Source of the DNA: Eutreptiella sp. 'Long Island Sound 2002'
Lineage: Eukaryota > Protista > Euglenida
Assembly (NCBI GenBank): GCA_964036045.1
Contig: OZ038378.1
Location: 17,670,001 to 17,734,000 of the forward strand
Reading direction: 5' to 3'
Length of the DNA stretch: 64,000 nt
The notes under the pieces are model-generated. The model did no database searches and was not told where the DNA came from. It was given only the letters and a program-made list of their open reading frames with translations. Numbering within the stretch: the first letter of the stretch is position 1; the number at the start of each line of letters is the position of its first letter. The position numbers were made by a program, and so were the translations under genes. Of this stretch, positions 17,177 through 51,824 are shown one piece after another.

Positions 17177-17399
17177 TTATTGTTATTGTTATTGTTATTG
17201 TTATTGTCTGAGCGGTGTATGTTTAGGGAGGTATTCCCCAAGGGAGAATGGCAGTCACCTCCCGTATGACGGCGTGAGCTATATGTGCCACGCGCTCGGG
17301 AGGACTACGCACCCCCACCGCCGGCCCCCGTACCTCGTACTGGCCCCTTTTGGCGGCCGCGGGGTGGCTTGCCCGCTGCTTTTGCCTTCGGATGGATGT

Positions 17400-19340
17400 C
17401 AGGAATGTCTTTGGGTGATAATCTGGGCATGCATTGGGTGATCGATTTTTACTGCATATAGTCTGTGGTCGTGGTTTGGTGCTCATTTTGTTACTCTGTT
17501 TGGGTTTCTGGTTTTTTTTTTTAGAAAAGGGGGTGGGGGGGGTTTGCCAACTCTCTATTGATACTTTGAGGATTGTGGGGCACGGCACGTCCAAGGGCAT
17601 CGCATGCATTGCACGTTAAACATCATATTCGTTTGCACACTTGATTCTCATCATGCTGCTTTTGCTTTCTTGTGGATGGGTGATGTGTAATAATCTGAGC
17701 ATGTACATTGCATTTCAGACTTGGGTATTGATTTTTTCTGCATGTGGTCTGTGGTTATGATTTGATGCTTGGGTTGGGTTTCTGATTTCTCTGTGGATAT
17801 GCTTGTATGTCTTGTTACTTTGTTTCATATGTGATGGCTGGTGTTGCAATGGGGGGAAGGAGAAAGGAGGGGGGGGGGGGGTTGCCAATTCTCTATTGAT
17901 GCATCGAGGATTGGAGGGCATGGCACGTCAGGGAGCATCGCACACATTGCACGTTGAACATTATTTTCGTTTGCACACTTGATTCTCATCACGCTTCTTT
18001 TGCCTTCTGATGGTTGGGTAATGGGTAATAATTTGAGTATGCTCATTGCATTTCTGACTTGGGTATTGATTTTGACTGCATGTGGTCTGTGGTTGTGGTT
18101 TGGTGCTTGGGTTGGGTCTCAGATTTTTCTGCAGATATGCTTGTATATTTTGTTACTTTGTTTCATATGTGATGGCTGGTGTTGCTATTGGGGGGAGAGA
18201 AAAGAGGGGAGGGAGGTTTGCCAACTCTCTATTGAAACATTGAGGATTGGGGGGCACGGTACGTCAGGGAGCATCGCACGCATTGCACGTTGAACATCAT
18301 ATTCGTTTGCACACTTGATTCTCATCATGGTTTGAACAAGGAGTCTGAGGCATCATCAGTCATTCTTTGGGGATTGGGTCAGGCATGTGCATTGTCTTTG
18401 AGTTCGTGGGTCAACTTGATTAGCAAATGGAGGGTTGCATCAGTAGAAAAATGGGCACATGAGAGCATTCTTTCTGCACCTGTTCCTATTATTGGAGTGG
18501 GTCAGCTGGTTTGTGAGGTGGGGATGGTTGAATCTGATGGTGGTGCCATGCTTCCTTTGCATTCATGGATGCGTATCTGGTACATTGGCACACTCATTCT
18601 GAAGGCATCTTCTATTGGCAAGGACTCTGTGAGATTAGCACGAAGTGGGTTGAATCAGGTGGGGTTGCAACAATTCTTTGGCACTTGAGCGCATGTTTCC
18701 GATTCTTTGGCGTTTTCGTAAGCAATTCTTTCATCGGTTTTGGGTGTATTGATTCATTTTGGAAGTCTCCGAGAAGCAGCATCAATTGGCAGAGAATGAG
18801 ATGAGTCGGATGGGGTTGCAACATTTCTTTGGCACTCACGATCATGTTCCCGATTCTTTGACACACTCGTGCACAATTCTTTCACTGGTCTTGAGAGCAG
18901 GAGTTCATTTTGAGATCGGGGAGCAGCATCGGTTAGCAGGGGATGGGATAGAGCAGAGAGTGGGACCGAGCATGATTAGCACGCAGTGGGTTAAATCAGG
19001 TGGGGTTGCAACAATTCTTTGACAGTGGAGAGCACGTTTCCAATTCTTTGGTACTTTCGTACGCAATTCTTTCATCGGTTTTGGGTGTGTTGATTCCTTT
19101 TGAGAATCTCCAGCATCAATTGGCAACGGATGAGATGAATCGGATGGGGTTGCAACATTTCTTTGGCATGCAAGATCCTGGCCCTGATTCTTTGACACAC
19201 TTGTGCTCAATTCTTTCATAGGTCTTGAGGGCGTGAGTTCATTTTGAGATTAGTGGGGGAGCAGCATTGATTAGCAGGGGATGGGTTGGAGCGGAGAGAG
19301 GGACCGAGCATGATTCGTTCACAGAGTGAGTTTGATGTTC
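17400..19340 (-). repeat. Repetitive 3'UTR of copy A (about 340-bp units at about 17570/17920/18250; further duplicated units 18630-19220)
   Basis: gcatcgca...ttgcacgtt.aacat...ttcgtttgcacacttgattctcatca occurs three times; gggttgcaaca.ttcttt blocks recur. Confidence 0.75.
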
Positions 19341-20371
19341 TTTTCTTTACTCTGAGTCCCAATACTCCGAGTCGTCAGATTCTACGATTGACTCTGGGGC
19401 AGATTCGCTGGCAGAGGATGAGACTTCATCCCAATTGGGAGGTGGCGGCTCAGGGTCGTGTTGTTGATCGTGTGAATTGCATGGCCATTCGTCTTGTAGC
19501 AGGACAAGCGTGAGTCTGGGTGTTAGAGAGAGTAGCAGTTCTCTGCTGAACATGATGTACAACTCATCTGTGGCACGAAAAGTTATCATGCTGGTTCTGA
19601 TCTGCTCATTCTGCGGGGACATCATGGAGATGTATACTGCTTGAGGATCATGTTCAGTTCTAGGGCAGGCAATGCACGCATGAAAGGATGTGGGGTTGAG
19701 TGTGGGAGTAAGCAGGTTCAGTGGGACTGGGTTCATCGCTTCTTGATGAGGTTGTGCACTGCGGCCTACAAAATTGTATGCTGCAGCAATGACGGAGTGA
19801 TTCCATTGCGGGTTGAGCACGGGCCATCCTACTGGATCTGATTCTTTCAGCAGGTTCTCTCTCCGGATCAGTGGCGGCCAGCGTCGTCTTCTTCCTAGCC
19901 CATTCAGATACTTTGCACTCAAAGTGGTCGCCTCCTCGGTTGATAGAGAAGCTTCTTTTGATCGCAGCACTATTCCTGACCATGTGATGCATGTACTCAG
20001 AGCGGACCATTGTTCTGCATTCTCAATGAGGAAATCCGGCACCAAGCCCCATTCTTGTTGATCTCCTTCTTGAAGTGTTGCAAAGTGAGCTGGGGATTTC
20101 CATTCCACGGGGGGGCCGCCGGGACCGGACCCTTTACGCCGACTCCCCCCCCCCCCCTCCCTGCCGGGTTTTGGCCCGGAAGTGCCGGACCATGGGCGCC
20201 GAAGGCGCCCTAAGGAAATTTTGCCTGACTTAGTAGAGGGTGAAAAATTGGGGTTTTGCCCCATGTGTCTATACTCAAAATACTCAGTTTCTTTAGGAGA
20301 ACCCAATAGTGGATGAAAACCAAATTGGACCAAATATCCATACCACTCCTGTGCAGAGGTATGTCAGAGAT

Positions 20372-20441
20372 GGGCCCTACCCTAGTGGTAAAGCAGTGCC
20401 CTGCAACTTGAAAGTCCTGGGTTCAAATCCAAGTGGTGTCA
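20372..20441 (+). ncRNA. tRNA-Cys(GCA)-like sequence (pseudo-tRNA/SINE head) inside the MITE
   Basis: A-box-like TAGTGGTAAAGC, anticodon loop CTGCAAC, B-box GGTTCAAATCC; acceptor and anticodon stems do not pair properly. Confidence 0.6.
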
Positions 20442-50920: not shown

Positions 50921-50992
50921 ATTGCAGATTCCCTAGTGTTCGTTGTGTGATATTGGATGAATGAGGATTAATGTCAGTGGTATATGGCAGCG

Positions 50993-51360
50993 AGCACAAG
51001 GAGCTGGCACTGTACCAGTTCTCCAGGCGCGCACGGGATTTTTGACAAGGCACGATTAATTTCTCGGAGAGTTCTTTCTTTTAATCAGAAATTATGAGGC
51101 AGCAAGCACAAGGAGCTGGCACCGAACCACTTCTCCAGACGCGCACGGGATTTTTGATGAGGCACGATTAATTTCTCGGAGAGTTCTTTCTTTTCATCAG
51201 GAATTATGAGGCAGCAAGCACAAGGAGCTGGCACCGTACCAGTTCTCCAGACGCGCACGGAATTTTTGACGAGGCACGATTAATTTCTCGGAGAGTTCTT
51301 TCTTTTCATCAGAAATTATGGGGCAGCAAGCACAAGGAGCTGGCACCGAACCAGTTCTCC
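50993..51360 (-). repeat. 112-bp tandem repeats in the 5'UTR (3+ copies in B, fewer in A at 33107-33260)
   Basis: ttctcggagagttctttc at 51061, 51173 and 51285. Confidence 0.85.
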
Positions 51361-51824
51361 CTACATGTACGAATTCTTAGGTGGGGTATGATCGAATTCT
51401 TTGAGATTTTGATTTTTTTAACCAGTTCTCCTAATGCGCATGAGTTCTTTGGTGGGGCTTGAATTGTGTTCTCTGAGAGTTTTTGTTGTCATCAGGAATC
51501 ATAGGGCAGCAGGCGCGTGATGGTAGCATACTTTTGTGGTGATCGATTGCACATATTAGCAAGCACATGGAGCTGGCACCGAACCTGTTCTCCGGCATGC
51601 ATGGAGAGAGTTGAACTGTAACTGAGAGATAACTAAACAGTACCTTACCTTACGAGGTGAGATTATGGCTCCACCGGTTTTCTGCACACACCGCTCGCAA
51701 CTTTGAGCGATTGCCCCACCGGCGCCAGGAGCCATACTTGGGCCGGCTTGACGGGAAGTGGCAGGAACAACAGGACCGTCCACAGACAACAAATGCCATT
51801 GGACTGCCCCCCAGCACCCCCAGT

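Follow-up and report, generated by a model that had tools for sequence, protein, structure and literature searches.

LINE-type (long interspersed nuclear element) retrotransposons normally span 4–8 kb and carry one or two open reading frames (ORFs) (PMC3894237, PMC5203782). One or two ORFs are also typical of LINEs with an apurinic/apyrimidinic endonuclease (APE); the elements of the trypanosomatid Ingi clade, which belong to them, lack ORF1 and encode just one ORF (PMC3894237). Here, we analyze a stretch of 64,000 nucleotides (nt) from the euglenid Eutreptiella sp. 'Long Island Sound 2002' (assembly GCA_964036045.1, contig OZ038378.1, positions 17,670,001 to 17,734,000), hereafter the window, set in a genome of 2.28 Gb and holding two copies, A and B, of a far longer element. 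An initial annotation, made from the letters of the window, described A and B as separate insertions of a two-module retrotransposon, in which an upstream module X, bearing a gene termed ORF0, is fused head-to-tail to a downstream module Y with ORF1 and a full ORF2. We consider it likely that both belong instead to a long three-gene APE-type LINE that moved as a unit of ~15 kb into (AC)n microsatellites, in which ORF0 is an ancestral gene and a duplicated piece of ORF2, referred to below as the fossil, is a later self-copy.

The nearest counterparts in target and layout, rather than in reverse transcriptase (RT) phylogeny, are the microsatellite-specific APE-type LINEs of the R1 group, which measure ~4–7 kb. 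They include Mino of mosquitoes in (AC)n, Waldo in (ACAY)n, Kibi in (TC)n, Koshi in (TTC)n, and Dong in (TAA)n (PMC3812793). Like the A/B element, these LINEs are bordered by their target microsatellite on both sides, Mino even sharing (AC)n, and head-to-tail stacking is expected from such targeting; the A/B element differs in residing in a euglenid and not an animal, in its length of 15–16.6 kb, in having three ORFs, and in an RT too divergent for Pfam.

Among relatives of euglenids, the most familiar LINEs are those of the Ingi/L1Tc clade of trypanosomatids, and L1Tc carries a ribozyme at its 5′ end. The A/B element shares with this clade the host phylum Euglenozoa and the succession of APE, RT, and RNase H followed by a C-terminal zinc motif, a likeness of domains rather than of RT phylogeny. 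Unlike the single-ORF Ingi elements, it has two separate ORFs ahead of ORF2, namely ORF0 and ORF1, and purifying selection acts on each of them. In primate L1, too, ORF1 is preceded by an additional ORF; this ORF0, the only widely cited one of that name, is antisense, 71 aa long, primate-specific, and part of elements of 6–8 kb (Denli et al. 2015; PMC5203782). The ORF0 described here, in contrast, lies on the sense strand, is 620–628 aa long, and is common to two families. Composite LINE products are known as well, end-to-end template jumps giving chimeras of the U6/L1 type. Double insertions are reported to yield tandem dimers of transposable elements (PMC5932611). The A/B element resembles chimeric or tandem products in having a second 3′ end with an A-run in its interior that was then propagated, and differs in that the extra piece is ~1 kb of its own 3′ region, sits in an intergenic spacer, is fixed in ~80 copies, and adds no gene.

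Two Independent Insertions with One Layout

The limits of the two copies were set by the terminal motifs that they share: A measures 16,587 nt and B 15,010 nt, both on the minus strand (Table 1), which is the A- and C-rich sense strand and bears all long ORFs. A self-comparison of the window found A and B colinear at 87–96% identity, with a common layout consisting of a structured 5′ leader, ORF0, a spacer, a fossil of the ORF2 3′ end, an A-run, ORF1, ORF2, a 3′ untranslated region (UTR) of 2 kb, and an (AATAAC)n tail. The initial reading of two non-LTR (long terminal repeat) copies of 15–16.5 kb with the same architecture is borne out by these data, as are the X–Y junctions placed near 28940 and 47110, where the A-runs lie, and an ORF0 that is intact in B (it is broken in A). 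The copies also have the private lesions ascribed to them, i.e., a 1,113-nt insertion in ORF2 of A (20108–21220) and a 397-nt deletion at 46542 in B. The insertion in A holds 84-nt tandem repeats (20617–20816) and is unmatched in the other loci fetched.

A distance of 3 kb separates A from B, and the two point the same way. The (AC)n-rich satellite ahead of each copy also occurs behind A, an arrangement to be expected had one insertion and its satellite been duplicated locally, in tandem or as a segment. The relationships of the two copies to others in the genome are at odds with such a duplication, since each is nearer to a copy on another chromosome than to its neighbor. A is nearest to the copy at C3:23.48 Mb, at 92–97% identity in all seven segments, and is closer to it in 7/7. 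B is nearest to the copy at C25:24.23 Mb, at 95.5–96% over ORF0, spacer plus fossil, ORF1 leader, and ORF1, and at 88% over the 5′UTR; the C25 copy is without ORF2 and 3′UTR, so that this comparison covers five segments, in 5/5 of which B is closer to it than to A. A subfamily-level deletion of 207 nt in the fossil further separates the two, nothing behind A corresponds to the 3′ flank of B (36734 to 35047), and head-to-tail pairs of mixed subfamilies also occur at other loci, on C2, C3, C6, and C18. The nearest relatives and the 207-nt difference together rule out a local duplication, to which we give next to no credence: A and B are independent landings of different subfamilies in one satellite, i.e., separate insertions, as first annotated. 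The accompanying statement that their outer flanks differ on both sides is correct for the 3′ flank of B and has to be withdrawn for the others, the satellite being present at both ends of A and at the 5′ end of B.

ORF1, ORF2, and the Class of the Element

The coding capacity of the element is hard to recognize by routine searches. Pfam gave no match for the ORFs of the window or for an intact ORF2 piece of 1,199 aa (from locus L001), even at E = 10; a single-sequence search of the PDB found nothing, and word-based protein searches with the C-terminal part of ORF2, with ORF0, and with ORF2 returned only the element's own copies. An exhaustive HMMER search with the 1,199-aa piece found 471 relatives, among which long ones at 25–30% identity pass the Pfam threshold for Exo_endo_phos, and one, P0006, reaches 27.1 bits for RVT_1, under the cut-off of 29.6. 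A family profile of 13 sequences matched L1 endonuclease (2e-9 to 1e-7) and R2 RT (1e-6 to 7e-6) in the PDB. The RT residues D698 and D700 of motif A and D819 and D820 of an FSDD motif are invariant in the ORF2 alignment, and so are an RNase H-like D-E-D triad and a CX2CX9HX4C motif; a profile of the RNase H region had only three PDB matches, all of them RNase H chains (3hst at 0.006; 3u3g and 4h8k at 0.12). These Pfam, profile, and motif matches identify ORF2 as APE-RT-RNase H-CCHC, the domain order initially proposed, and the element, classified by its predicted proteins, is an APE-type non-LTR retrotransposon, i.e., a LINE, with the RNase H and CCHC that mark the group of I, R1, LOA, Tad1, Ingi, and allies. 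The contigs of the ENA 'metagenome' assembly ERZ25074135, the source of L001, are 100% identical to the genome of the window where compared, in L001, L031, and C19:40.2326–40.2378 Mb; this assembly is thus from the same organism, and its matches in protein databases are not independent of that genome.

ORF1 is 861 aa long in intact copies and ORF2 has ~1,820 codons; for each, the ratio of nonsynonymous to synonymous substitution (dN/dS) between subfamilies is 0.12–0.35. ORF1 is weakly related to the ORF1 of more distant families (E = 6.7e-6). ORF2 lies in the frame of ORF1, straight after a single UGA codon (UAA in the C13 copy), as seen at 44460–44470 in B, 25922–25930 in A, and L010:4619–4621. 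For at least 110 codons after the ORF1 stop there is no Met, and this stretch is constrained (dN/dS 0.16–0.48 between subfamilies), which suggests that an ORF1–ORF2 fusion may be made by stop-codon readthrough, or that ORF2 may be translated by reinitiation without an AUG.

A more distant family, with an ORF2 29% identical, forms a head-to-tail array with a period of ~12 kb in locus L028 (ERZ25074135 ctg8337). Between its successive ORF2s lies, besides ORF1, an extra open frame of 620–690 aa with no detectable similarity to ORF0.

Termini and the (AC)n Target

In all seven copies with ends read, A and B included, the element begins with ACTGGGGGTGG... and ends with ...CGCTCAGAC(AATAAC)n, the tail comprising two to five AATAAC units, and (AC)n borders it on both sides (7/7). 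The self-comparison of the window revealed no terminal direct or inverted repeats in A or B. The first ~72 nt form a long helix (51753–51824 in B, 33691–33762 in A, and also in L030–L035), in which 9 of 24 pairs have compensatory double changes across related families and which is kept even in families flanked by an (ACAGT)n-like repeat in place of (AC)n; the ~50 nt that follow are nearly invariant. Rfam had no match in the window at gathering scores and recovered no known ribozyme family in the 5′ leader, whose only match at E ≤ 10 was a chance one to SCARNA2.

Genome-Wide Copies and Mobility of the Whole Unit

Six further loci were fetched beside the window, five of which hold complete copies (14.7–18.6 kb) that agree in the succession of their parts and in their outermost bases at either end, and the flanks of the fetched copies past the microsatellite are mutually unrelated. 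Exhaustive motif counts gave 80 genomic matches for the ORF1 leader and 80 for the 5′ leader, two of the latter belonging to a sister family (described below), and 0 for the reversed-pattern controls. A fossil-specific motif lies ~240–330 nt upstream of 61 of the 80 ORF1 leaders; seven more belong to a variant subfamily, in whose fetched loci the fossil is seen upstream, eight have an upstream fossil found by a second fossil motif, and the last four have a 5′ leader 5.2–5.8 kb upstream. No ORF1 leader without an upstream ORF0 module was found among the 80 matches, which answers the proposal to look for copies of module Y on its own. The X–Y junction, which a local duplication of A and B would have confined to the window, is thus present in ~80 copies.

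The copies on C19, C18, and C24 are 98.5–99.5% identical over all seven segments and have unrelated flanks, and this near-identity reflects recent transposition of the complete 15.4-kb unit. In this respect, the genome-wide junction search upholds the initial view that the whole unit moves as one piece. The C24 copy has a 3.2-kb insertion in its 3′UTR (L020:1080–4259) with open frames of 290 and 447 codons, the rest being 99% identical. Full-length copies predominate, although 5′-truncated ones exist (L036 begins at element position 768) and several matches of the 3′-end motif have no junction partner nearby.

Head-to-tail neighbors 14–26 kb apart are common, often of mixed subfamilies (C2, C3, C6, C12, C14, and C18). 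Eleven ORF1-leader motifs fall within ~210 kb at C3:80.71–80.93 Mb. In a dense cluster at C7:11.6–19.5 Mb, the spacings of parts recur exactly, e.g., one of 11,964 nt that is found twice at a distance of ~0.8 Mb, which indicates that large segmental duplications carry the element there. A derivative of ~1 kb in (AC)n was met in L031 (C19:40232599–40235626, positions ~1383–2448); it joins a sister-type 5′ leader and the 112-nt repeats to the final ~280 nt of the 3′UTR, tail included, and it looks like a non-autonomous partner.

ORF0 Is a Gene under Selection

ORF0 encodes 620–628 aa in intact copies and consists of a conserved central domain of ~100 aa, at residues ~160–260, between low-complexity arms. 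Several of its properties could be those of a chance frame, or of a decaying captured sequence without a role in the element: it is mostly of low complexity, it has no Pfam match, no homologue was found among 5.8 billion proteins outside the element's own copies, and its AlphaFold model is poor. Its pattern of substitution speaks for a gene, with a dN/dS of 0.22–0.39 between subfamilies over ~585 codons at synonymous distances (dS) of up to 0.38. This is purifying selection, obtained from the dN/dS check that the initial annotation had called for, and it marks ORF0 as a real gene, though one under weaker constraint than ORF1 and ORF2. The frame is, moreover, open in 4/8 copies examined, and ORF0 is kept in the sister family, with the central domain ~68–70% identical and a C-terminal motif retained. 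We therefore hold a chance or decaying frame to be quite improbable.

Whether ORF0 and ORF1 are related to each other bears on the earlier description of the element as keeping two ORF1-type genes. BLASTP aligned them over 89 aa at E = 0.019, and a domain-level hhalign comparison gave a local E of 0.017 at a probability of 2.7%, which is not significant; whole-protein hhalign found nothing. Feature searches of the Atlas with the ORF0 and ORF1 domains scored below 0.9 and pointed to different families for each, and the AlphaFold2 models of both proteins (mean pLDDT, i.e., predicted local distance difference test, of 40) are too poor to compare. By eye, cores of ~80 residues in both show the pattern FW...W...RS..G.PY. 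Distant paralogy of ORF0 and ORF1 is possible on this evidence; with a similarity at P ~0.02 and a failed whole-protein profile comparison, the description as two ORF1-type genes is not sustained.

The ORF2 Fossil Probably Descends from the Element's Own Lineage

The internal paralogy of the element joins 28968–29974 to 19226–20108 in A (83%) and 47217–47903 to 39199–39882 in B (81%). The duplicated part comprises only the terminal ~300 codons of ORF2 with their stop codon and ~120–165 nt of 3′UTR; no endonuclease or other N-terminal part of ORF2 was detectable in the upstream region, and the upstream part has no further internal paralogy to ORF1 or ORF2 beyond the fossil. The paralogous ORF2 that had been assigned to module X, with RT and RNase H deleted, hence stands as far as its 3′ end and adjoining 3′UTR are concerned and falls short in its N-terminal part.

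The fossil in A is 67% identical to the functional ORF2 at the amino acid level. A 1-nt deletion is common to 7/7 copies examined, two to four stops interrupt the ORF2 frame, and the 207 nt kept by A are deleted in B and in the C13, C19, C18, C24, and C25 copies. Among copies, the dN/dS of the fossil is 0.53–0.98, and this value and the shared lesions indicate that it was dead before the family diversified. An A-rich run separates it from the ORF1 leader in 8/8 aligned copies. The fossil tree has the same topology of three lineages as the ORF2 tree, in keeping with one founding event. Over ~225 codons, the synonymous distance between the fossil and the element's own ORF2 is 0.21–0.24, compared with 0.37 between own and sister ORF2 and 0.45 between the fossil and sister ORF2, the divergence of own from sister ORF2 having built up under selection (dN/dS 0.18). 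The element's own ORF2 is nearer to the fossil than to the sister's ORF2, which places the origin of the fossil in the element's own lineage after the sister split.

A Sister Family with ORF0 and without the Fossil

The sister family is 83–86% identical to A and B in ORF1–ORF2 DNA and ~88% identical in ORF2 protein. Three copies hold the ORF1–ORF2 region (C12:44.496 Mb, C4:21.11 Mb, and C24:14.75 Mb), and the 5′ part was read at C12:44.496 Mb, which was walked with 3-kb loci. (P0172, tried as a representative of the sister family, is another copy of the A/B element's own family and was rejected.) This part contains a 5′ leader that is 85% identical and repeats of the 112-nt type. It has an ORF0 orthologue (E = 2.6e-149), whose identity of ~68–70% holds over the central 115 residues and whose low-complexity arms have diverged. 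Downstream follow a spacer homologous to the element's ORF0–fossil spacer (65–72%), 2.2 kb of the sister's own sequence, and the ORF1 leader; no ORF2 fossil was found in this family at E ≤ 1. The presence of ORF0 in the sister too makes it ancestral, and a sister with ORF0 and the same gene order without a fossil dates the three-gene order to before the fossil.

These observations bear on the fusion first proposed, i.e., a heterodimer of two paralogous LINEs, in which an element X, with ORF0 as its ORF1 and a gutted ORF2, was joined to an element Y and the product then spread, possibly before the sister split, with later loss of the fossil in the sister. The ORF2 3′ end, stop codon, 3′UTR piece of 120–165 nt, and A-run lie exactly between ORF0 and the ORF1 leader, as would be expected after a template jump to a second, polyadenylated RNA, and the weak similarity of ORF0 and ORF1 over ~80 residues noted above would fit such a pair. 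A donor separated from ORF2 by a dS of 0.21–0.24 should, however, have had an ORF1 ~80% identical to that of the element, and ORF0 is not significantly similar to ORF1; the upstream part is otherwise unlike ORF1 and ORF2, and the sister has the gene order and no fossil. We regard a heterodimer as unlikely, and the fusion of two different elements is the part of the initial annotation that our data do not support, given the ORF0-bearing, fossil-free sister and the short distance of the fossil to its own ORF2.

ORF0 is, as far as the two families tell, an ancestral, selected gene of the lineage. The simplest history would make the fossil a neutral remnant of a partial self-copy that was fixed in the ORF0–ORF1 spacer of a master element after the sister split and before the family radiated. 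It could have arisen in one event, as a nested, 5′-truncated, A-tailed retrocopy of a prematurely polyadenylated transcript, or in two, by template switching or as a tandem dimer trimmed by deletions.

Several points weigh against the history that we prefer. The regions from spacer to ORF1 leader cannot be aligned between the families, so that a clean insertion site of the fossil is not demonstrable, and the sister family may have lost an older fossil. The fossil tree is unrooted, L002, meant as its outgroup, having failed to align over the fossil, and events were ordered by synonymous distances that cover only ~225 codons. Concerning mobility, (AC)n on both flanks makes target-site duplications unreadable, no copy examined (n = 8) has all three ORFs intact, which leaves present-day activity hypothetical, and the single 15-kb transcript is itself deduced from genomic DNA.

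Features of the Window

The coordinates of both copies and of the sequences around them are collected in Table 1. Within the 1.7-kb sequence between the (AC)n flank of B and the satellite, ~670 nt (~36062–36734) are 87% identical to the sequence just upstream of the C25 copy; the whole 35047–36734 is possibly another (AC)n-associated element.

Table 1. Parts of copies A and B and neighboring sequences, in positions of the window.
Feature	Position	Strand	Remarks
Copy A	17176–33762	−	Decayed full-length insertion; ends match six other copies
Copy B	36815–51824	−	Same termini as A
5′UTR of A	33041–33762	−	113-nt repeats at 33108–33453
5′UTR of B	50921–51824	−	Conserved helix of ~72 nt, then 112-nt tandem repeats (50986–51360)
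ORF0 of A	31183–33040	−	Frameshifted
ORF0 of B	49058–50920	−	Intact, 620 aa
ORF0–fossil spacer of A	29976–31182	−	
ORF0–fossil spacer of B	47905–49057	−	Unlike any other part of the element
ORF2 fossil of A	28939–29975	−	Most complete: ~297 codons, stop codon, ~150 nt of 3′UTR
ORF2 fossil of B	47099–47904	−	From the CCHC motif on, plus start of 3′UTR; 207-nt deletion
A-run, fossil to ORF1 leader	A 28930–28938; B 47090–47098	−	
ORF1 of A	25926–28504	−	
ORF1 of B	44464–46542	−	N-terminal part gone through the 397-nt deletion
ORF2 of A	19347–25925	−	In-frame stops and 1,113-nt insertion
ORF2 of B	38998–44463	−	~1,820 codons, three in-frame stops, no frameshift
3′UTR and tail of A	17206–19346; tail 17176–17205	−	Tail (AATAAC)5
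3′UTR and tail of B	36833–38997; tail ~36815–36832	−	443-nt tandem repeats (37683–38885); tail (AATAAC)3
(AC)n-rich satellite	33763–35046; also 16870–17175 and 51825–52496		Landing site
Unrelated 1.7-kb sequence	35047–36734		From the (AC)n flank of B to the satellite

A Model for Transposition

The features described above can be rationalized into a transposition cycle, which we put forward as a working model. (i) Transcription: a single RNA of ~15 kb would be copied from the element, starting at the structured 5′ leader, which would set the 5′ end, and ending in (AATAAC)n followed by (AC)n. (ii) Translation: the ORF0, ORF1, and ORF2 proteins would be made from this RNA, ORF2 by readthrough or reinitiation after ORF1. 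(iii) Integration: the ORF2 endonuclease would nick (AC)n/(GT)n, and the (AATAAC)n(AC)n end of the RNA would pair with the nicked strand and prime reverse transcription, i.e., target-primed reverse transcription (TPRT). Since every copy both inserts into (AC)n and has (AC)n at its borders, copies would be able to pile up head to tail.

A more far-reaching proposal, which we put forward tentatively and think less likely to hold than the three-gene LINE itself, is that ORF0 may be required as a third gene in a tricistronic lineage of euglenid LINEs that had not been described before. Its core and the C-terminal domain of ORF1 would be distantly paralogous, so that the element would make two related nucleic-acid-binding proteins; a self-processing 5′ leader would set the 15-kb RNA, and ORF2 would be expressed as a readthrough fusion. 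If this is true, LINEs would prove more diverse in size and coding content than is known so far.

Implications for LINE Biology in Euglenids

What moves here is one LINE and not a dimer built from two distinct ones. Targeting of (AC)n is already known; the novelty lies in the unusual length of this tricistronic LINE with a microsatellite target and in the fossil that it contains, and next to nothing has been described of the LINEs of its host. The mobile unit measures 15–16.6 kb, and purifying selection maintains its third, large ORF on the sense strand in at least two families. The element also offers a natural example of (AC)n targeting outside animals, of targeted insertion that builds head-to-tail arrays of mixed subfamilies, and of a partial self-copy that was fixed in a master element and has since served as an internal neutral clock. 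Finally, the published Euglena gracilis assembly is annotated with 1.5% LINE and 32.7% unknown repeat (PMC11252322), and an RT divergent enough to escape Pfam, such as the one described here, helps to explain this large share of unclassified repeats.

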